A program made the position numbers and the translations under genes. From Ranitomeya imitator (lineage: Eukaryota), in contig NC_091283.1 of assembly GCF_032444005.1 (NCBI RefSeq), positions 823,174,001-823,238,000 of the forward strand: DNA of 64,000 nucleotides, read 5' to 3'. Below, piece after piece: positions 28,493 through 55,499 of the stretch. Position 1 is the stretch's first letter. Each line of letters starts with the position of its first letter. The notes beneath the pieces were generated by a model. It saw only the letters and a program-made list of their open reading frames with translations. It did not search any database and had not been told where the DNA came from.

Positions 28493-28807
28493 AGGATCCA
28501 GTCAGCTGCTCCTCGCCTCTGGTGTCCACATGTCACCTCTTACGCCGTGTGCCGCAGGGATGTGGAGTCACAAATACCAGCATCGCTGCCGCCTCCTCCT
28601 GCCGTCCTGGCTGGGAAGTACAGGAGAGTCACACCTGGTACATGGCCGTCATTTTGCTGTTATAAGCTAAGAGTGACGAGACAGAAGTGTTGAACATTAA
28701 CCGCACAGATAACAGGCAGCTGACGCTGGCCGGAGATAACCAGGAGGCGGCCACTGGCAGGTGCAGACATTACACCAGCAGGACCACCTGGCCCTCAGGG
28801 CTACAAC

Positions 28808-29420
28808 CCTGGGGGCGAAGGAGCCGCCTGCAACTCGGGGATCCCACCCTGGGGGCGGAGGGGCCGCCTGCAACTCGGGGATCCCACCCTGGGGGCGGAG
28901 GGGCCGCCTGCAACTCGGAGATCCCACCCTGGGGGCGGAGGGGCCGCCTGCAACTCGGGGATCCCACCCTGGGGGCGGAGGGGCCGCCTGCAACTCGGGG
29001 ATCCCACCCTGGGGGCGGAGGGGCCGCCTGCAACTCGGGGATCCCACCCTGGGGGCGGAGGGGCCGCCTGCAACTCGGGGATCCCACCCTGGGGGCGGAG
29101 GGGCCGCCTGCAACTCGGGGATCCCACCCTGGGGGCGGAGGGGCCGCCTGCAACTCGGGGATCCCACCCTGGGGGCGGAGGGGCCGCCTGCAACTCGGGG
29201 ATCCCACCCTGGGGGCGGAGGGGCCGCCTGCAACTCGGGGATCCCACCCTGGGGGCGGAGGGGCCGCCTGCAACTCGGGGATCCCACCCTGGGGGCGGAG
29301 GGGCCGCCTGCAACTCGGGGATCCCACCCTGGGGGCGGAGGGGCCGCCTGCAACTCGGGGATCCCACCCTGGGGGCGGAGGGGCCGCCTGCAACTCGGGG
29401 ATCCCACCCTGGGGGCGGAG
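28808..29420. repeat. 40-bp G-rich VNTR, about 15 copies
   Basis: Unit GGGCCGCCTGCAACTCGGGGATCCCACCCTGGGGGCGGAG. Confidence 0.95.
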
Positions 29421-30603
29421 GGGCCGCTTGTCCCTTGGGGCTCCAATGTGGGTGGATGGGCCGCTTGTCCCATGGGGCTCCTATGTGTGTGGATGGGCCG
29501 CTTGTCCCTTGGGGCTCCTATGTGGGTGGATGGGCCGCTTGTCCCTTGGGGCTCCTATGTGGGTGGATGGGCCGCTTGTCCCTTGGGGCTCCTATGTGGG
29601 TGGATGGGCCGCTTGTCCCTTGGGGCTCCTATGTGGGTGGATGGGCCGCTTGTCCCTTGGGGCTCCTATGTGGGTGGATGGGCCGCTTGTCCCTTGGGGC
29701 TCCTATGTGGGTGGATGGGCCGCTTGTCCCTTGGGGCTCCTATGTGGGTGGATGGGCCGCTTGTCCCTTGGGGCTCCTATGTGGGTGGATGGGCCGCTTG
29801 TCCCTTGGGGCTCCTATGTGGGTGGATGGGCCGCTTGTCCCTTGGGGCTCCTATGTGGGTGGATGGGCCGCTTGTCCCTTGGGGCTCCTATGTGGGTGGA
29901 TGGGCCGCTTGTCCCTTGGGGCTCCTATGTGGGTGGATGGGCCGCTTGTCCCTTGGGGCTCCTATGTGGGTGGATGGGCCGCTTGTCCCTTGGGGCTCCT
30001 ATGTGGGTGGATGGGCCGCTTGTCCCTTGGGGCTCCTATGTGGGTGGATGGGCCGCTTGTCCCTTGGGGCTCCTATGTGGGTGGATGGGCCGCTTGTCCC
30101 TTGGGGCTCCTATGTGGGTGGATGGGCCGCTTGTCCCTTGGGGCTCCTATGTGGGTGGATGGGCCGCTTGTCCCTTGGGGCTCCTATGTGGGTGGATGGG
30201 CCGCTTGTCCCTTGGGGCTCCTATGTGGGTGGATGGGCCGCTTGTCCCTTGGGGCTCCTATGTGGGTGGATGGGCCGCTTGTCCCTTGGGGCTCCTATGT
30301 GGGTGGATGGGCCGCTTGTCCCTTGGGGCTCCTATGTGGGTGGATGGGCCGCTTGTCCCTTGGGGCTCCTATGTGGGTGGATGGGCCGCTTGTCCCTTGG
30401 GGCTCCTATGTGGGTGGATGGGCCGCTTGTCCCTTGGGGCTCCTATGTGGGTGGATGGGCCGCTTGTCCCTTGGGGCTCCTATGTGGGTGGATGGGCCGC
30501 TTGTCCCTTGGGGCTCCTATGTGGGTGGATGGGCCGCTTGTCCCTTGGGGCTCCTATGTGGGTGGATGGGCCGCTTGTCCCTGGGGGCTCCTATGCGGGT
30601 GGA
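29421..30603. repeat. 37-bp G-rich VNTR, about 32 copies
   Basis: Unit GGGCCGCTTGTCCCTTGGGGCTCCTATGTGGGTGGAT. Confidence 0.95.
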
Positions 30604-32349: not shown

Positions 32350-34310
32350 AAATACCCAAGTGTGACACCATTCTAAAAACTGCACCCCTCAAGGTTCTCA
32401 AAACCACATTCAAGAAGTTTATTAACCCTTCAGGTGTTTCACAGGAATTTTTGGAATGTTTAAATAAAAATTAACATTTTAAAATTTACTTCAGCTCCAA
32501 TTTGTTTTATTTTGCCAAGAGTTACAGGAGAAAATGGACCCCAAACCTTGTTGTACAATTTGTCCTGAGTACGCTGATACCACATAAGTGGAGGTAAACC
32601 ACTGTTTGGGCGCATGACAGAGCTTGGAAGCGAAGGAGCGCCATTTGACTTTTTAATGCAAAATTGACTGGAATTGAGATGGGACGCCATGTTGCGTTTG
32701 GAGAGCCACTGATGTGCCTAAACATTGAAACCCCCCACAAGTGACACCATTTTGGAAAGTAGACCCCCTAAGGAACTTATCTAGAGGTGTGGTGAGCACT
32801 TTGACCCACCACGTGCTTCACAGAAGTTTATAATGCAGAACCGTAAAAATAAAAAATATTTTTTGTAAAAAAAATGATCTTTTCGCCCCAAATTTTTTAT
32901 TTTACCAATGGTAAGAGAAGAATTTGGAACCAAAAAGTTGTTGCACAATTTGTCCTGAGTACTCTGATACCCCATATGTGGGGGTAAACCACTGTTTGGG
33001 CGCATGGGAGACCTCGGAAGGGAAGGAGTGCCGTTTGACCTTTCAATGCAAAATTGACAGGAATTGAGATGGGACGCCATGTTGCGTTTGAAGAGCCACT
33101 GATGTGCCTAAACATTGAAACCCCCCACAAGTGACAACATTTTGGAAAGTAGACCCCCTAAGGAACTTATCTAGAGGTATGGTGAGCACTTTGACCCACC
33201 ACGTGCTTCACAGAAGTTTATAATGCAGAACCGTAAAAATAAAAAATCATTTTTGTGAAAAAAAAAATGATCTTTTCGCCCCCAATTTTTTATTTTCCCA
33301 ATGGTAAGAGAAGAAATTGGAACCAAAAAGTTGTTGTACAATTTGTCCTCAGTACGCTGATACCCCATATGTGGGGGTAAACCACTGTTTGGGTGCATGG
33401 GAGAGCTCGGAAGGGAAGGAGCGCCGTTTGACTTTTCAATGCAAAATTCACAGGAATTGAGATGAGACGCCATGTTGCGTTTGGAGAGCCACTGATGTGC
33501 CTAAACATTGAAACCCCCCACAAGTGACACCATTTTGGAAAGTAGACCCCCTAAGGAACTTATCTAGATGTGTTGTGAGCACTTTGACCCACCAAGAGCT
33601 TCACAGAAGTTTATAATGCAGAGCCGTAAAAATAAAACAAATTTTGTTTCCCACAAATATTATTTTTTAGCCCCCAGTTTTGTATTTTCCCGAGGGGAAC
33701 AGGAGAAATTGGACCCCAAAATTTGTTGTGCAATTTGTCCTGAGTGCGCTGATACCCCATATGTGGGGGGGAACCACCGTTTGGGCGCATGGGAAGGCTC
33801 GGAAGGGAAGGAGCGCCATTTGGAATGCAGACTTAGATGGAATGGTCTGCAGGCGTCACATTGCGTTTGCAGAGCCCCTGATGTACCTAAACAGTAGAAA
33901 CCCCCAACAAGTGACCCCATATTGGAAACTAGACCCCCCCATGAACTTATCTAGATGTGTTGTGAGAACTTTGAGCCCACACGTATTTCACTACAGTTTA
34001 TAACGCAGAGCCGTGAAAATTAAAAAAATCTTTTTTTTCCCACAAAACTTATCTTTTAGCCCCCAGTTTTGTATTTTCCCAAGGGTAACAGGAGAACTTG
34101 GACCCTAAAAGTTGTTGTCCTATTTGTCCTGAGTACGCTGATACCCCATATATTGGGGTAAACTCCTGTTTGGGCACACGGGAGAGCTCGGAAGGGAAGG
34201 AGCACTGTTTTACTTTTTCAACGTAGAATTGGTTGGAATTGAGATCGGACGCCATGTTGCGTTTGGAGAGCCCCTGATGTGTCTAAACAGTGGAAACCCC
34301 CCAATTATAA
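32350..34310. repeat. ~390-bp tandem subrepeat, about 5 units (element A)
   Basis: CACAAGTGAC(A/C)CCATTTTGGAAA(G/C)TAGACCCC recurs near 32737, 33127, 33520 and 33907. Confidence 0.85.
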
Positions 34311-34674: not shown

Positions 34675-36715
34675 TGGGAAAATGGAAATAAATACATTTT
34701 TTAAATTTTTTTTACTTTTCCCCAACTAAGGGGGTAATGAAGGGGGGTTTGATTTACTTTTATAGCAGGTTTTTTAGCGGATTTTTATGATTGGCAGCCG
34801 TCACTCACTGAAAGACGCTTTCTATTGCAAAAAATATTTTTTGCGTTACCACATTTTGAGAGCTATAATTTTTCCATATTTGAGTCCACAGAGTCATGTG
34901 AGGTCTTGTTTTCTTGCGGGACGAGTTGACGTTTTTATTGGTAACACTTTCGGGCACGTGACATTTTTTGATCGCCTTTTATTCCGATTTTTGTGAGGCA
35001 GAATTACCAAAAACCAGCTATTCATGAATTTCTTTTGGGGGAGGCGTTTATACCGTTCCGCGTTTGGTAAAATTGATAAAGCCGTTTTATTCTTCGGGTC
35101 AGTACGATTACAGCGACACCTCATTTATATCATTTTTTTATGTTTTGGCGCTTTTATACGATAAAAACTATTTTATAGAAAAAATAATTATTTTTGCATC
35201 GCTTTATTCTGAGGACTATAACTTTTTTATTTTTTTGCTGATGTTGCTGTATGGCGGCTCATTTTTTGCGGGACAAGATGACGCTTTCAGCGGTACCCTG
35301 GTTATTTATATCTGTCTTTTTGATCGCGTGTTATTCCACTTTTTGTTCAGCGGTATGATAATAAAGCGTTGTTTTTTGCCTCGTTTTTTTTTTTTCTTAC
35401 GGTGTTTACTGAAGGGGTTAACTAGTGGGCCAGTTTTATAGGTCGGGTCGTTACGGACGCGGCGATACTAAATATGTGTACTTTTATTGTTTTGTTTTTT
35501 TTATTTAGATAAAGAAATGTATTTATGGGAATAATATTTTTTTTTTTTTTTCATTATTTAGGATTTTTTTTTTTTTTTTTACACACTTGTAAAAAAATTT
35601 TTTTTTACTTTTTTACTTTGTCCCAGGGGGGGACAATACAGATCGGTGATCTGCCAGTTTGCACAGCACTCTGACAGATCACCGATCTGTCTGAGAGCAG
35701 TGCAGCGTTACCAAGTGCCTGCTCTGAGCAGGCACTTGGTAAGCCACCTCCCTCCCTGCAGGACCCGGATCCGCGGCCATATTGGATCCGGGACTTGATG
35801 CAGGGAGGGAGGTGGGAGACCCCCGGAGCAACGCGATCACATCGCGTTGCTGCGGGGGTCTCAGGGAAGCCCGCAGGGAGCCCCCTCCCTGCGCGATGCT
35901 TCCCTGCACCGCCGGCACATCGCGATCATGTTTGATCGCGGTGTGCCGGGGGTTAATGTGTCGGGGGCGGTCCGTGACTGCTCCTGGCACATAGTGCCGG
36001 ATGTCAGCTGCGATAAGCAGCTGACACCCGGCCGCGATCGGCCGCGCTCCCCCCGTGAGCGCGGCCGATCGGCTATGACGTACTATTCCGTCCTTGGGAA
36101 GTAAAGCCCACCCCACATGGACGGAATAGTACGTCTAATGGCAGAAAGGGGTTAACCCTTGTCAGGCTGCATAATTTTACAACCTTAACAGGCTGCATAG
36201 GTACAATTGTACCTTCACATATACCTCCACTGTGGGAAGACTTTACTTGGTTTCAGAAACTAAAGTTCATTCAGCTACAAATGTTATGCTGATATCTATT
36301 GTTCAGTGTTGTTACTGGTCACTTATGTTGCTGTCAATTAAGTTAATTCAAACTGGGAGTGGCTTCTACTTGTCTTCCTGCCTCCTTCCTCTCATTAGCC
36401 ATTTTGCTGTTCATCTCATTGCTGTGAGCACACATTTCTAGGCTTGTGAAGTCTTCAATTTCTTGGAAACGAAGGTAGGAAAGTCTCACAGCATCTAACA
36501 GCCAGTTATACCTTTATTCTCATTATGTGGGGACAGAACAGTCAAATTGTCTTTCAGCCTGGACTTGGCTTACATATATTTTGTATGAAACTTATCACTA
36601 TAGGTATAATTTTTATTCGAAAAATGGATAATAATTAGTATCTACATATTGTTTTACGATGTTTTATTTATATTCAGCACAAAATACGAAGCCAAAATTC
36701 ATCTAGCAAGTCATC

Positions 36716-36774
36716 ATGAGTGATAGTAATGCTGGATCTAGTTTCCGCCATAATCCAAGAAAACGTGTTTGCAG
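36716..36774 (+). CDS. piggyBac transposase, predicted exon 1 (MSDSNAGSSFRHNPRKRVCR)
   Basis: ATG at 36716; donor AG|GTTAGT; splices in frame to the acceptor at 36851. Confidence 0.6.
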
Positions 36775-36851
36775 GTTAGTATAATTTTGTGAAAAGCCAA
36801 TAATGTAGTATTTCGGAAAATTATTTATTTTACATTTTTTCATATTTACAG

Positions 36852-38670
36852 ATTTACGTCTGACGAAATAATGCGAATGCTAGAAGAATCTGATTCTGAG
36901 CATGAGGATGAACCATATGTTCCATCTGATGATGAAAACTATGTACCACAAGTGGATGTTACTGAAGAAGATTCAGACATTGAACAAGAAATGGTCATAG
37001 AGCATGAAAATGAATACGAATCAGACGAAAGTGTTGAGGATGATTCTGTGCCTCAAAGTGCAGGCGACATTTGGACTGCTAAGGATGAAACTCAATGGTG
37101 CAGTAATCCACTGCCAAATGCACAAACAAAATCTCGTAATGTCCTACGACAAAGAGGTGGCCCTGCAGCAATCAGCAACCTATATACAGCAAAAGAGCTA
37201 TTCAAGTCCATCATGACTCCCGAGATGTGTGACATCATATTACGGGAAACGAATCGAAAGGCCAAGAGAGTTTGTGATGCTTACAACAACGAACTGGTAC
37301 AACGTTTTCCTGATTCTTCCAAACGGCCACCACAAAAAACATTCAAGCAATTTACTGAAACTGAACTTCATGCATTTTTGGGCATACTGATTGCTGCTGG
37401 TGTGCACAGAGCCAACAAAGAGAATCTGGAGGAAATGTGGAATGTTGCTGCTCTGCCTCTTATACGTGCAGCCATGTCTCGTGACCGCTTCAAGATGATA
37501 CTCAGATTTATCAGGTTTGACAACGAAAATACACGTGCAGAACGTGTGCAAACAGATAAAGCTGCACCAATACGGGACATCTGGACAATGCTGAACAGTA
37601 ATCTGGAGAGAGCCTACAAGCCATATCATTGTATCACCGTCGACGAGCAATTATTTCCATTTAGAGGTCATACTAAATTTACCCAGTATATACCTTCAAA
37701 ACCAGCTAAATATGGCATAAAGATTTTCTGGGCTTGTGACTCATCAAATGCCTACCCTTTACAAGGTCAGCTCTACACTGGGAAACCAACTGATGGTCCT
37801 CGACAAGTAAACATTGGAGAACGAACAGTATTGGACCTAGTGAGCTCGTATAAAGGCTCTGGAAGAAATGTCACCACCGATAACTTCTTTACAACCATGG
37901 AACTAGCTAAGGTATTGAACTCCTGGAACATGACACTAGTTGGTACAGTGAGAAAAAACAAAAGGTTCCTACCTAACAACATGCAGCCTGCCAAAGAAAG
38001 GCCTGTATACTCGACAAATTTTGCCTACAATCATGATGCAACAGTCTGTTCATATGTACCAAAGAAGAACAAATCAGTCGTGCTTCTATCATCTATGCAC
38101 ATGACGGGAGAAGTTGAAGAGACACTAGCAGCCAAGCCAGAGATAATAAAATACTACAACATAACAAAAGGTGGCGTTGATGTTATGGATAAAATGTTGG
38201 GAGAGTACACTGTGAAACGACGAACATCACGTTGGACTTTGGCATTTTTCTACAATATGATTGATGTCAGTGGGTTAGCATCCTACATCATCTACAGAGA
38301 ACACAATCCAAGCTTCAGGGCAAAGGATCAACGAAGAAAGTTCCTGAAAGATCTCGCAAATCAGCTGTGTATGATTGCAATTGAAGATAGTAGTACAAAC
38401 AAAATGATAATGAGAAACCATTTTCTTCGAGGTGCAGTAGAAATGGTGCTTGGACGATGCATTGTGGTAGCATCGCAGCCAGCAGCTGGCCCCAAAATAC
38501 CTCATGGTAGTCGTGGACCCTCCCCTGTTGTTGGTAGTTGCTATGTCTGCAGAGACCTGAGGCGAAAACAACGCAAGACTAGAAAGTCTTGTGTGGTTTG
38601 TGTGAAACCCATTTGCGATGAACACTCTGTAGCAAAGCCAACATGCATTACTTGCAAAGAAAATCAATAA
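36852..38670 (+). CDS. piggyBac transposase main exon (599-aa ORF from 36871; 625 aa if spliced)
   Basis: No stops; catalytic motifs TVDEQL, TTDNFF, GGVDVMD; acidic N-terminus; C-terminal Cys-rich domain; AATAAA overlapping the stop at 38666. Confidence 0.93.
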
Positions 38671-39732
38671 AAAAAAGTTTCTTACATTTTCTTTTATAAT
38701 GTAAATGAACAGTTTTTTACTTGTTTATAATAGTTAAATAGCATTATCATTAAAAAAAAATTTATGCTTTTTCCCTTGCATTATCTTCATTCAAAATATA
38801 TGAGGTACATTTGTACCTATGCAGCTTGTTATGGATGCAAAAAGATCTCGACCCCTTATCTCGGAAGCGGGTGGAGATATTTTATTGAAATTTGGCCAAT
38901 ATATTCTGGACCAAAAATGTAGAGATGTCACGAAATTTCAGCCCTCTACGTCTTTTCAAAAAAAAGTTATTGCAATTTTAAAACGGAATAGTTACAATTG
39001 TACCTATTCAGCCAGATAAGGGTTAAAATAAAGATCCCTGTCCCCTCCCACCCCCTGTGCGCCCGCCCGCTGTTAATAAAATACTCACCCGGCTCCCTCG
39101 CAGCTTCATCTCAGTGCCAGCTTCTCCTGTATGAGCGGTCACGTGGTGCCGCCGAATATAGTCATGAACATGCGGCTCCAGCTCCCATAGGGGTGGAGCC
39201 GCATATTCATGACTGTAATGGGGGACACCACGTGACCGCTCATACAGGAGAAGGTGCGGCGCGGAGAGGACGCTTCGAGGGAGCTGGGTGAGTATTTTCA
39301 GCGGCCGGGCGCACGGGGGGAGGGGACAGGGATCTTTATTTTAAACACAAAAAAAAAAAAAAGGATTTTTCATATCTTCTCTCTAGCGAACGCTGCTGGA
39401 GAGAAAATATAAATGGCGGCTTCAGCACCAGATGCAGGGGACAGCGCTTACTTGTAGCGCTGTCTCCTGCACGGTCACACTGATGTTCACGGTAAGGACA
39501 CGGATAATTCCGGTACCGGAATTGTCTGGACGTGTGGGACAGGCCTTACAGGGGGTTCGGACGTAAGCCCTGATGGGACCACCGACCGTGGGAAGACCGC
39601 AGTGTGAGGGGCCTCGCCTCATCTGCACCCACCCTAGGTTACCCGAGTCCTTCCCATAAGCTGCAGCCCAATGCTGTGTACACAGTGCCCCTGCTCTGAC
39701 CCCCATCTATGCCTCTTTCCAAGCATTCCAGG

Positions 39733-42472: not shown

Positions 42473-43124
42473 TCAATACTTTGTAATATATCCTTTGTTG
42501 GCAATGACAGAGGTCAAACGTTTTCTGTAAGTCTTCACAAGGTTGCCACACACTGTTGTTGGTATGTTGGCCCATTCCTCCATGCAGATCTCCTCTAGAG
42601 CAGTGATGTTTTTGGCTTTTCGCTTGGCAACACGGACTTTCAACTCCCTCCAAAGGTTTTCTATAGGGTTGAGATCTGGAGACTGGCTAGGCCACTCCAG
42701 GACCTTGAAATGCTTCTTACGAAGCCACTCCTTCGTTGCCCTGGCGGTGTGCTTTGGATCATTGTCATGTTGAAAGACCCAGCCACGTTTCATCTTCAAT
42801 GCCCTTGCTGATGGAAGGAGGTTTGCACTCAAAATCTCACGATACATGGCCCCATTCATTCTTTCATGTACCCGGATCAGTCGTCCTGGCCCCTTTGCAG
42901 AGAAACAGCCCCAAAGCATGATGTTTCCACCACCATGCTTTACAGTAGGTATGGTGTTTGATGGATGCAACTCAGTATTCTTTTTCCTCCAAACACGACA
43001 AGTTGTGTTTCTACCAAACAGTTCCAGTTTGGTTTCATCAGACCATAGGACATTCTCCCAAAACTCCTCTGGATCATCCAAATGCTCTCTAGCAAACTTC
43101 AGACGGGCCCGGACATGTACTGGC
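42473..43124 (-). pseudogene. Tc1 transposase C-terminal half ([22 protein letters not shown])
   Basis: In-frame continuation [23 protein letters not shown]; 34 residues between the second D and the E. Confidence 0.9.
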
Positions 43125-43619: not shown

Positions 43620-46600
43620 CCAAAAGTGACACCATTCTAAAAACTGCACCCCTCAAGGTACTCAAAACCACATTCAAGAAGTTTATTAACCCTTCAGGTG
43701 CTTCACAGCAGCAGAAGCAACATGGAAGGAAAAAATGAACATTTAACTTTTTAGTCACAAAAATTATCTTTTAGCAACAATTTTTTTATTTTCCCAATGG
43801 TAAAAGGAGAAACTGAACCACGAAAGTTGTTGTCCAATTTGTCCTGAGTACGCTGATACCTCATATGTGGGGGTAAACCCCTGTTTGGGCGCACGGCAGG
43901 GCTTGGAAGGGAAGGAGCGCCATTTGACTTTTTGAATCAAAAATTGGCTCCACTCTTTAGCGGACACCATGTCATGTTTGGAGAGCCCCCGTGTGCCTAA
44001 AAATTGGAGCTCCCCCACAAGTGACCCCATTTTGGAAACTAGACGCCCCAAGGAACTTATCTAGATGCATAGTGAGCACTTTGAACCCCCAGGTGCTTCA
44101 CAAATTGATCCGTAAAAATGAAAAAGTACTTTTTTTTCACAAAAAAATTCTTTTAGCCTCAATTTTTTCATTTTCACATGGGCAACAGGATAAAATGGAT
44201 CCTAAAATGTGTTGGGCAATTTCTCCTGAGTACACCAATACCTCACATGTGGGGGTAAACCACTGTTTGGGCACATGGTAAGGCTCGGAAGGGAAGGAGC
44301 GCCATTTGACTTTTTGAATGAAAAATTATTTCCATCGTTAGCGGACACCATGTCGCGTTTGGATAGCTCCTGTGTGCCTAAACATTGGCGCTCCCCCACA
44401 AGTGACCCCATTTTGGAAACTAGACCCCCCAAGGAACTTATTTAGATGCCTAGTGAGCACTTTAAACCCTCAGGTGCTTCACAAATTGATCTGTAAAAAT
44501 GAAAAAGTACTTTTTTTTCACAAAAAAATTCTTTTCGCCTCAATTTTTTCATTTTCACATGGGCAGTAGGATAAAATGGATCATAAAATTTGTTGGGCAA
44601 TTTCTCCCGAGTACGTCGATACCTCATATGTGGGGGTAAACCACTGTTTGGGCACTCGGCAGGGCTCGGAAGGAAAGGCGCGCCATTTGACTTTTTGAAT
44701 GGAAAATTAGCTCCAATTGTTAGCGGACACCATGTCGCGTTTGGAGAGCCCCTGTGTGCCTAAACATTGGAGCTCCCCCACAAGTGACCCCATTTTGGAA
44801 ACTAGACCCCCCAAGGAACTTATCTAGATGCATATTGAGCACTTTAAACCCCCAGGTGCTTCACAGAAGTTTATAACGCAGAGCCATGAAAATAAAAAAT
44901 AATTTTTCTTTCCTCAAAAATGATTTTTTAGCCTGGAATTTCCTATTTTGCCAAGGATAATAGGAGAAATTGGACCCCAAATATTGTTGTCCAGTTTGTC
45001 CTGAGTACGCTGATACCCCATATGTGGGGGTAAACCACTGTTTGGGCGCACGGCAGGGCTCGGAAGGGATGGCACGCCATTTGGCTTTTTAAATGGAAAA
45101 TTAGCTCCAATCATTAGCGGACACCATGTCACGTTTGGAGAGCCCCTGTGTGCCTAAACATTGGAGATCCCCCAGAAATGACACCATTTTGGAAACTAGA
45201 CCCCCAAAGGAACTAATCTAGATGTGTGGTGAGGACTTTGAACCCCCAAGTGCTTCACAGAAGTTTATAACGCAGAGCCATGAAAATAAAAAAAAAAAAT
45301 TGTTTTCTCAAAAATGATCTTTTAGCCTGCAATTTTTTATTTTCCCAAGGGTAACAGGAGAAATTTGACCCCAAAATTTGTTGTCCAGTTTCTCCTGAGT
45401 ACGCTGATACCCCATATGTGGGGGTAAATCACTGTTTGGGCACATGCAGGGGCTCGGAAGTGAAGTAGTGACGTTTTGAAATGCAGACTTTGATGGAATG
45501 CTCTGTGGGCGTCACGTTGCGTTTGCAGAGCCCCTGATGTGGCTTAACAGTAGAAACCCCCCACAAGTGACCCCATTTTGGAAACTAGACCCCCAAAGGA
45601 ACTTATCTAGATGTGTGATGAGCACTTTGAACCCCCAAGCGCTTCATAGAAGTTTATAATGCAGAGCCGTGAAAATAATAAATACGTTTTCTTTCCTCAA
45701 AAATAATTATTTAGCCCAGAATTTTTTAATTTTCCCAAGGGTAACAGGAGAAATTTGACCCCAATATTTGTTGTCCAGTTTCTCCTGAGTACGGTGATAC
45801 CCCATATGTGGGGGTAAACTACTGTTTGGGCACATGCCGGGGCTTGGAATTGAAGTAGTGACGTTTTGAAATGCAGACTTTGATGGAATGCTCTGCGGGC
45901 GTCACGTTGCGTTTGCAGAGCCCCTGATGTGCCTAAACAGTAGAAACCCCCCACAAGTGACCCCATTTTGGAAACTAGACCCCGAAAGGAACTTATCTAG
46001 ATGTGTGGTGAGCACTTTGAACCCCCAAGTGCTTCATAGAAGTTTATAATGCAGAGCCGTGAAAATAATAAATACGTTTTCTTTCCTCAAAAATAATTAT
46101 TTAGCCCAGAATTTTTTATTTTCCCAAGGGTTACAGGAGAAATTGGACCCCAAAAGTTGTTGTCCAGTTTCTCCTGAGTACGCTGATACCCCATGAGTGG
46201 GGGTAAACCACTGTTTGGGCACACGTCGGGGCTCAGAAGGGAAGTAGTGACTTTTGAAATGCAGACTTTGATGGAATGGTCTGCGGGTGTCACGTTGCGT
46301 TTGCAGAGCCCCTGGTGTGCCTAAACAGTAGAAACCCCCACAAGTGACCCCATTTTAGAAACTAGACCCCCCAAGGAACTTATCTAGATATGTGGTGAGC
46401 ACTTTGAACCCCCAAGTGCTTCACAGACGTTTACAACGCAGAGCCTTGAAAATAAAAAATCATTTTTCTTTCCTCAAAAATTATGTTTTAGCAAGCATTT
46501 TTTTAGATTCACAAGGGTAACAGGAGAAATTGGACCCCAGTAATTGTTGCGCAGTTTATCCTGAGTACACTGATACCCCATATGTGGGGGTAAACCACTG

Positions 46601-46735
46601 TTTGGGCACACGTCAGGGCTCGGAAGTGAGGGAGCACCATTTGACTTTTTGAATACGAGATTGGCTGGAATCAATGGTGGCGCCATGTTGCGTTTGGAGA
46701 CCCCTGATGTGCCTAAACAGTGGTAACCCCTCAAT
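43620..46735. repeat. ~385-390-bp tandem subrepeat, about 8 units (element B)
   Basis: Same marker motif near 44017, 44398, 44780, 45178, 45565, 45953 and 46340. Confidence 0.85.
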
Positions 46736-53604: not shown

Positions 53605-55440
53605 GGCCATCACTGCCTGCCGCGACCACTGCCTGCCTGCCGCGACCACTACCTGCCTGCCGCGACCACTGCCTGCCTGCCGCGACCACTGCCTGCCTGC
53701 CGCCGCGACCACTGCCTGCCTGCCGCGACCACTGCCTGCCTGCCGCGACCACTGCCTGCCTGCCGCGACCACTGCCTGCCTGCCGCGACCACTGCCTGCC
53801 GCCGCGACCACTGCCTGCCTGCCGCGACCACTGCCTGCCGCTGCCATCACTGCCTGCCGCGACCACTGCCTGCCGCCGCCATCACTGCCTGCCTGCCGCG
53901 ACCCCTGCCTGCCTGCCGCGACCCCTGCCTGCCTGCCGCGATCATCACTGCCCGCCGGCGCGACCACTGCCTGCCTGCCGCGACCACTGCCTGCCTGCCG
54001 CGACCACTGCCTGCCTGCCTGCCGCGATCATCACTGCCTGCCTGCCGCGACCACTGCCTGCCTGCCGCGATCATCACTGCCTGCCGCCGCGACCACTGCC
54101 TGCCTGCCGCGACCACTGCCTGCCTGCCGCGACCACTGCCTGCCTGCCGCGACCACTGCCTGCCTGCCGCCGCGACCACTGCCTGCCTGCCGCGACCACT
54201 GCCTGCCTGCCGCGACCACTGCCTGCCTGCCGCGACCACTGCCTGCCTGCCGCGACCACTGCCTGCCTGCCGCGACCACTGCCTGCCTGCCGCGACCACT
54301 GCCTGCCGCCGCGACCACTGCCTGCCTGCCGCGACCACTGCCTGCCGCTGCCATCACTGCCTGCCGCGACCACTGCCTGCCGCCGCCATCACTGCCTGCC
54401 TGCCGCGACCCCTGCCTGCCTGCCGCGACCCCTGCCTGCCTGCCGCGATCATCACTGCCCGCCGGCGCGACCACTGCCTGCCTGCCGCGACCACTGCCTG
54501 CCGCGACCACTGCCTGCCTGCCGCGACCACTGCCTGCCGCTGCCATCACTGCCTGCCTGCCGCGACCACTGCCTGCCTGCCGCGATCATCACTGCCTGCC
54601 TGCCGCGATCATCACTGCCTGCCTGCCGCGATCATCACTGCCTGCCTGCCGCGATCATCACTGCCTGCCTGCCGCGATCATCACTGCCTGCCTGCCGCGA
54701 CCACTGCCTGCCTGCCGCGACCACTGCCTGCCTGCCGCGATCATCACTGCCTGCCTGCCGCGATCACCACTGCCTGCCTGCCGCGATCACCACTGCCTGC
54801 CTGCCGCGATCACCACTGCCTGCCTGCCGCGACCATCACTGCCTGCCTGCCGCGACCATCACTGCCTGCCTGCCGCGACCATCACTGCCTGCCTGCCGCG
54901 ACCATCACTGCCTGCCTGCCGCGACCATCACTGCCTGCCTGCCGCGACCATCACTGCCTGCCTGCCGCGACCATCACTGCCTGCCTGCCTGCCGCGACCA
55001 TCACTGCCTGCCTGCCTGCCGCGACCATCACTGCCTGCCTGCCGCGACCATCACTGCCTGCCTGCCGCGACCATCACTGCCTGCCTGCCGCGACCATCAC
55101 TGCCTGCCTGCCGCGACCATCACTGCCTGCCTGCCGCGACCATCACTGCCTGCCTGCCGCGACCATCACTGCCTGCCTGCCGCGACCATCACTGCCTGCC
55201 TGCCGCGACCATCACTGCCTGCCTGCCGCGACCATCCCTGCCTGCCTGCCGCGACCATCCCTGCCTGCCTGCCGCGACCATCACTGCCTGCCTGCCGCGA
55301 CCATCCCTGCCTGCCTGCCGCGACCATCCCTGCCTGCCTGCCGCGACCATCCCTGCCTGCCTGCCGCGACCATCCCTGCCTGCCTGCCGCGACCATCCCT
55401 GCCTGCCTGCCGCGACCATCCCTGCCTGCCCGCCGCGATC
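53605..55440. repeat. 20/23-bp CpG-rich minisatellite at the start of SLC25A28 intron 1
   Basis: Units CCGCGACCACTGCCTGCCTG, CCGCGA(T/C)CATCACTGCCTGCCTG and CCGCGACCATCCCTGCCTGCCTG in successive zones. Confidence 0.95.
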
Positions 55441-55499
55441 ACTTCCTGCAGCTCAGCGGACCCTCCTCCTGCCTGAGCTGGGGGTCTACCATGCTCCAG

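Follow-up and report, generated by a model that had tools for sequence, protein, structure and literature searches.

A piggyBac-like transposon of Ranitomeya imitator with a predicted intron near the 5' end of its transposase gene

The window, a 64,000-nt stretch of the Ranitomeya imitator genome (NCBI RefSeq assembly GCF_032444005.1, contig NC_091283.1, forward-strand positions 823,174,001 to 823,238,000; all coordinates below are positions in this stretch), carries a transposon which, by direct reading of the sequence, spans from the TTAA at 36152 to the TTAA at 39026, with 2867 nt between the two TTAAs. Its GC content is 39%, as against 45-49% in the flanks. The TTAA target-site duplications lie at 36152-36155 on the 5' side, where loose contig ends at 36152 mark other insertion sites, and at 39023-39026 on the 3' side, where loose contig ends were found at 39026/39027 in three runs. 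The termini are inverted and follow the CCC..GGG pattern, with TTAACCCTTGTCAGGCTG at the left end and TTAACCCTTATCTGGCTG on the reverse strand at the right end. The 5' terminal inverted repeat (TIR; CCCTTGTCAGGCTGCATA, 36156-36173, plus strand) is 86% complementary to 39005-39022, and the figure of 86% also holds when the TTAAs are included (36152-36173 and 39005-39026). The 18-nt terminal pattern occurs in the 64-kb window at the two ends of the element only (0.02 occurrences being expected by chance). A sub-terminal repeat with the palindromic core GGTACAATTGTACC begins 2 nt past the 5' TIR (36175-36214, plus strand) and matches 38803-38842 at 88%. On the right side the palindrome occurs twice, once beside the terminus, where together with the TIR ending in GGG it forms the 3' terminal repeat (38990-39022, plus strand), and once about 160 nt farther in, as the 3' internal repeat (38803-38842, plus strand); both were delimited by repeat pairs. 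This asymmetric layout of internal repeats is typical of piggyBac. The original prediction, made from the letters of the DNA, had listed both termini, both TTAAs and the asymmetric internal repeats, and all of them were found. Together with the open transposase gene described below, they support the view that the element is complete.

The region at 36215-36715 (plus strand) is non-coding, presumably contains the promoter and lies within a single contig that includes the 5' end of the element (36152-36774). The transposase gene, also on the plus strand, starts at the ATG at 36716-36718, with an in-frame TAG upstream at 36704. Coding exon 1 (36716-36774, 59 nt) consists of MSDSNAGSSFRHNPRKRVC followed by AG, the first two bases of an Arg codon; its 19 codons and 2 nt encode a basic patch, PRKR, and the resulting N-terminus is identical to that of the RefSeq proteins P0001, P0122, P0129, P0131 and P0132. 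The 77-nt segment that follows (36775-36851, 21% GC) has the features of a GT..AG phase-2 intron, with the donor CAG/GTTAGT and the 3' end TTTTTTCATATTTACAG, in which a pyrimidine run precedes the CAG (TTTACAG/A); it is delimited by its splice sites, by joints in contigs and by comparison with relatives. Coding exon 2, including the stop codon, occupies 36852-38670; its start at 36852 reads R-FTSDEIMRMLEESDSE, in frame with the 599-aa open reading frame (ORF), and the in-frame continuation past the intron is R-FTSDEIMRMLEE. The only long ORF of the element is at 36871-38670 (599 aa), and the spliced total is 625 codons, while unspliced reading from the first ATG meets a stop after 22 codons. 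The proposal of an ATG at 36716, a 77-nt intron at 36775-36851 and an in-frame join giving 625 aa agrees with the sequence and with 625-aa models in RefSeq. An AATAAA at 38666-38671 (plus strand), the polyadenylation signal that had been claimed for the element, overlaps the stop codon; contigs run beyond it to about 38900 with unchanged depth.

Exon 2 encodes, according to ORF, Pfam and alignment analysis, a DDE_Tnp_1_7 core (Pfam, 1.1e-71 on the ORF), the DDD catalytic triad and a Cys-rich C-terminal domain. Its best match among solved structures (phmmer) is the transposase of Trichoplusia ni piggyBac (6X67, 8.6e-80), which it matches over nearly the full length. The Asp residues of the frog protein align to D268, D346 and D447 of the T. 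ni triad, and the fourth Asp (D450) is present too. The C-terminus has the pattern C-x2-C-x13-C-x2-C-x4-C-x2-H-x6-C-x2-C, and in an alignment with 15 relatives C583, C586, C600, C603, C608, H611, C618 and C621 are invariant or near-invariant. The T. ni alignment and the Cys/His pattern bear out the triad and the C-terminal domain that were expected from the DNA. With T. ni piggyBac (6X67/6X68) the frog element shares the TTAA target, the CCC..GGG termini, the asymmetric internal repeats, the DDD triad, the Cys-rich domain at the C-terminus and a disordered N-terminus that is acidic and rich in Ser, but the terminal sequences of the two elements are unlike each other and the ORF of the moth element is described as having a single exon.

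The element is present in 24 public runs from seven studies, which were available as contigs and whose library type is presumed to be RNA ("RNA?"). Four of these runs, from four studies, were compared in terms of contigs: X1, X8 and X19 from organism A, and X10 from organism B, a second frog species. In all four a contig (of presumed RNA type) leaves out precisely 77 nt bounded by GT..AG; the joint, given as 36771>36849, can be shifted by 3 nt and is equivalent to 36774/36852. This is the junction on which the original prediction could be checked, and it is seen in assembled contigs rather than reads, from libraries presumed to be RNA. Each of the four runs also has a contig that continues through the intron, and the coverage of this unspliced form is similar to that of the spliced one (spliced/unspliced depth 51/39, 153/255, 21/15 and 9/9). 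In a sub-family of about 90% identity the same donor is joined, with 3 extra nt (one codon) after the junction. The intron of organism B contains a 10-nt insertion (87 nt in total) and its junction is unchanged; in a coding segment such an insertion would cause a frameshift, which implies that the segment is non-coding.

DNA copies devoid of the 77 nt could yield the same contigs. According to such an explanation, the skip is a DNA variant: some genomic copies lack the segment, and the runs are DNA, for example low-coverage genome skims. The run labels ("RNA?" or "?") leave room for DNA, the total contig sizes of 23-180 Mb also fit skims, in which only repeats assemble, and the similar depth of the two forms is what a mixture of copies could give. 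However, the donor is a canonical extended one (CAG/GTTAGT), the acceptor is a polypyrimidine-CAG and the join keeps the frame; the same intron is modelled by RefSeq in many copies; introns of 39, 50 and 87 nt, of unrelated sequence, share its position and phase; and the second sub-family, some 90% identical, uses the same donor. These points make a DNA variant very improbable. The RefSeq models, the contig joints, the same-donor sub-family and the insertion in organism B, taken together, make it very likely that the 77-nt intron is removed by splicing.

Relatives of the element from metagenomes carry the intron as well. In locus L011 (48% identity) a 32-nt exon 1 ends at the donor GAG/GTTAGT and is followed by a 50-nt intron that splits the same Arg codon (AG/A); in locus L004 (45% identity) the exon has 32 nt and the intron 39 nt, with the phase unchanged. 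This agreement in position and phase at 45-48% identity implies that the intron is old within the sub-clade rather than something peculiar to the frog copy. Gene calls that read through the intron give T-rich translations ending at the same Arg, such as P0165 (…FIFPSIY-R-YTSDEI) and P0138 (…FSIFC-R-YADDEL), and the aphid protein P0020 has such a read-through signature ahead of it too (MFYIIL-R-LPSDEI). Models of the spliced type from Daktulosphaira, Vanessa, Rhynchophorus and Cyphomyrmex have a short basic N-terminus ahead of the same Arg. In eight distant relatives of 31-38% identity (L006, L009, L012, L033, L035, L041, L045 and L048) the N-terminus, in which Met and a basic patch are followed by a helix and a Ser-rich acidic stretch, is encoded uninterrupted. 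The spliced exon restores, as had been proposed, a typical N-terminal pattern with the PRKR patch: relatives encode a similar N-terminus. Related elements lacking the GT-AG pair had been considered as evidence against the intron; among the loci compared, those of 31-38% identity have the uninterrupted N-terminus and those of 45-48% (L011 and L004) have the intron. The closest metagenome loci, L001 and L002 (81% nucleotide identity), are 5'-truncated copies and are uninformative on the intron. In L005, a metagenome relative of 53% identity, a second intron-like GT..AG gap was noticed at about 275-360, in the acidic N-terminal region, at a position that differs from that of the frog intron.

The gene structures predicted for these relatives indicate an intron position that is ancestral to a large, mostly insect piggyBac clade. 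Within this insect-centred clade an intron near the N-terminus is normal rather than odd. The original prediction had regarded an intron as unusual for piggyBac, and in this respect it does not hold, since the same intron is conserved in the clade and is already modelled in RefSeq. A literature search found no paper on an intron in an autonomous piggyBac-like element.

A word search returned a 100% match in RefSeq, of 625 aa, whose N-terminus, MSDSNAGSSFRHNPRKRVCRFTSDEIM, equals that of the predicted spliced model. The 625-aa models are named "piggyBac transposable element-derived protein 4-like" (PGBD4-like). The spliced protein model itself is thus not new, because the automatic annotation of NCBI already has the exon-intron structure. 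The protein cluster at 90% contains 14 named proteins, most of them of 625 aa; 13 are from R. imitator, and the cluster also includes one fragment from the frog Anomaloglossus. The representative protein P0001 is found on at least seven chromosome-scale records, and at least 14 distinct RefSeq proteins are 1-3 residues away from the window copy (the element-derived part being compared). Searches were run with exon 2 or with P0001, and the two exons were joined for translation and for counting the differences from P0001. Near-identical copies, which the original prediction had proposed to count, are present, and a family of diverged copies only, which would have spoken against a recent transposon, is not what was found. 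Compared with the contigs of three organism A runs, the window copy has three differences (36386, 36617 and 38389) over about 2875 nt (approximately 0.1%). In contigs of other copies the element ends precisely at the TTAAs and different flanks follow. A contig joint 36220>38877 in X1, X8 and X19 corresponds to a MITE-like derivative of about 220 bp with an internal deletion, which is deeper than the full-length 5' end. Near-uniform copies, exact departures at the TTAAs and a deletion derivative characterise a family that has amplified recently. The assembled contigs that made up the material showed no empty-site allele. The dN/dS between the window copy and organism B is about 0.5, a rough value that comes from only 20 of more than 55 differences and carries little weight. 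The R. imitator genome paper (marked as retracted) counts 10,239 piggyBac fragments, 0.12% of the genome, and a literature search found no paper that describes this R. imitator element.

The RefSeq name PGBD4-like implies domesticated host genes rather than a mobile element, and an intron together with a conserved ORF is also typical of domesticated PGBD genes (PMC5381638). Several observations contradict domestication: (i) the inverted terminus and the TTAA duplication are intact at either end; (ii) many near-identical paralogues sit on different chromosomes, and not at the single locus expected of a domesticated gene; (iii) contigs lead from the element ends into different flanks; (iv) deletion derivatives exist; (v) the copy is situated in DNA rich in satellites and transposons; and (vi) human PGBD4 is described as a single-ORF primate gene, with no orthology shown. 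We thus regard domestication as having hardly any chance of being correct, and consider it highly probable that the sequence at 36152-39026 arose through a single recent insertion of a piggyBac-like R. imitator DNA transposon of the autonomous type.

The surroundings of the insertion are repetitive. Satellite arrays with a 393-394-nt unit flank it at 32505-34303 and 43758-46723 (4.6 and 7.6 copies, respectively, 86% matches). An ORF fragment of the Tc1/mariner-type DDE_3 lies on the minus strand at 42476-43081 (Pfam, 1.8e-16). At 39023-39344 there is a near-perfect palindrome of 322 nt, the arms of which pair almost over their full length, with a TTAA on both sides, the left one being shared with the 3' duplication of the piggyBac; it resembles a hairpin-type TTAA MITE belonging to a different family. 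The long multi-frame ORFs at 28806-30603 and 53613-55449 are tandem arrays with units of 37-40 nt and of 23/46/69 nt (99% and 84-88% matches, respectively), and the weak Pfam hits in them are probably artefacts of repetition.

On sequence grounds, the family is a credible candidate for an active vertebrate transposon. Excision and TTAA integration by its own transposase receive indirect support from the many near-identical copies, the different flanks and the deletion derivatives. The known young or active vertebrate piggyBacs include piggyBat of Myotis lucifugus (9C0F) and Uribo2 and Kobuta of Xenopus, which resemble the frog family in living in a vertebrate, in having amplified recently and in encoding an intact transposase. 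The piggyBat is a distant relative, matching at 4.6e-30 over the catalytic core only. Kobuta is described as a single intron-free ORF (PMC5381638).

One of the three differences of the window copy, an A at 38389 (plus strand), is private: according to the contig comparison and protein counts the copy has AGT (Ser533), where all compared runs and all RefSeq siblings have C and thus CGT (Arg533). R533 is kept as Arg in at least 90% of 15 relatives and aligns to R518 of T. ni piggyBac, a residue that the structural paper PMC7351741 does not mention. The window copy might be a dead or crippled passenger of a real family, moved only by the transposase of its siblings; the uniqueness of S533 and the near-invariance of R533, which extends to T. 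ni piggyBac, speak for this, but no role is documented for the residue and the rest of the copy is intact. We consider such a passenger status possible, with the balance somewhat against it. Regarding the copy as part of a recently mobile family, R533S may weaken it, and consensus copies elsewhere would be the likely source of any activity. Sibling copies are in any case the better candidates for activity, because the window copy carries this private change at a near-invariant residue.

The closest named relatives of the frog transposase are from insects. Apart from Anomaloglossus, a frog, the named relatives among the best 120 matches all come from insects, and identity to the named insect proteins is 60-72% (phylloxera, Daktulosphaira, 64%; the aphid Uroleucon, 62-72%; Vanessa, 60%). 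These PGBD4/1-like proteins of Daktulosphaira, Uroleucon and Vanessa are the nearest named relatives over the full length; compared at the protein level, they share the N-terminal layout, with a basic patch before the conserved Arg at the intron site, and they differ in having insect hosts. The AP transposase system of aphids is a published insect piggyBac-like system for comparison (PMC13099356). In a quick maximum-likelihood tree of 45 rows (all named matches, 25 unlabelled matches and, as outgroup, 4 distant metagenome loci) the two frog proteins fall into a fully supported group of ten; its other members have no taxon label, and the nearest rows are 73-86% identical. The group of ten is nested among rows from Hemiptera, Lepidoptera and Diptera. 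All rows were kept once the tree had been computed. In the same tree the transposases P0036 from a beetle (Rhynchophorus) and P0108 from a wasp (Cotesia) are near-identical (path of about 0.17, 100% support), which suggests that there was a recent transfer between insects or that both carry the same contaminant.

An identity of 60-72% across phyla is hardly compatible with vertical descent, which makes horizontal transfer at some point in the history of the family the sensible reading. An arthropod origin through horizontal transfer is likely, judging from the relatives and from a tree in which the nearest rows are taxon-unlabelled. The mini-intron (77 nt, 21% GC) is insect-like in size and composition. 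Contamination by prey DNA was rejected as an explanation, the copy being inside frog repeats of a chromosome-scale assembly and the family being present in runs of seven studies. A scan of viral contigs found no relatives and hence no lead to a viral carrier, and no paper on piggyBac transfer into frogs was found in a literature search.

We propose that the element is served by a two-exon transposase gene, which would give a 625-aa protein after loss of the 77-nt phase-2 intron. By analogy with other members of piggyBac, a dimer or tetramer of the transposase would bind the terminal and internal repeats, excise the element through hairpins and reinsert it at TTAA. The spliced mRNA would encode the 625-aa protein with its extra basic patch; when the intron is retained, the first ATG would give a 22-codon peptide, and this upstream ORF would precede the 599-aa form, starting at the ATG at 36871. 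Because only a 22-codon peptide remains from the first ATG on retention, splicing probably sets both the amount and the form of the protein. The P element of Drosophila is a DNA transposon with a splicing-controlled transposase, the product depending on intron removal; it belongs to an unrelated superfamily, and tissue-specific control of the frog intron would be a hypothetical parallel. In piggyBac the disordered N-terminal region is reported to be important for excision (PMC9499001), and the 625-aa and 599-aa forms may therefore differ in activity. That the intron might shield the element from HUSH-type silencing was considered and set aside, as it rests on analogy with work in human cells, in which simple spliced stuffers gave no protection (PMC8770142).

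The 3' splice site of the element may also accept host exons and so act as an exon trap. Newman et al. pointed to a possible 3' splice site immediately before the ORFs of moth piggyBac and PGBD3 and proposed piggyBac as a natural exon trap (PMC2268245); the frog acceptor differs from that of T. ni in being paired with its own upstream coding exon. With PGBD3 and CSB-PGBD3 (PMC2268245) the frog element shares a 3' splice site directly upstream of the transposase ORF and a poly(A) signal after it, but PGBD3 is a fixed, domesticated single locus, while the frog acceptor is part of the intron of the element itself, in a multi-copy family that looks mobile. Two chimeric R. imitator models in GenBank (P0030 and P0124), which are predictions, have host exons joined to the element's acceptor at Arg20. 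The host part of one of them resembles T-cell-receptor J and constant segments, and the exon-trap behaviour of both models is predicted.

Combining these points, we tentatively offer a scenario that is rather less likely than not: an arthropod piggyBac may have entered dendrobatoid frogs, perhaps from prey or parasites, and may still be mobile, its insect-style intron acting as a splicing switch in which the retained 22-codon upstream ORF throttles or shortens the protein, and its acceptor acting as an exon trap where copies have landed in host introns.

Spliced protein models were already known from RefSeq, and the functional points made here are predictions. The family supplies uniform copies whose ends are intact, as well as two natural pairs for comparison, the proteins of 625 and 599 aa and R533/S533. 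It offers a concrete case for a probable transfer of a transposon from insects to vertebrates. An acceptor ahead of piggyBac ORFs has long been noted as an "exon trap"; in this clade it forms the 3' boundary of an intron that belongs to the element itself.
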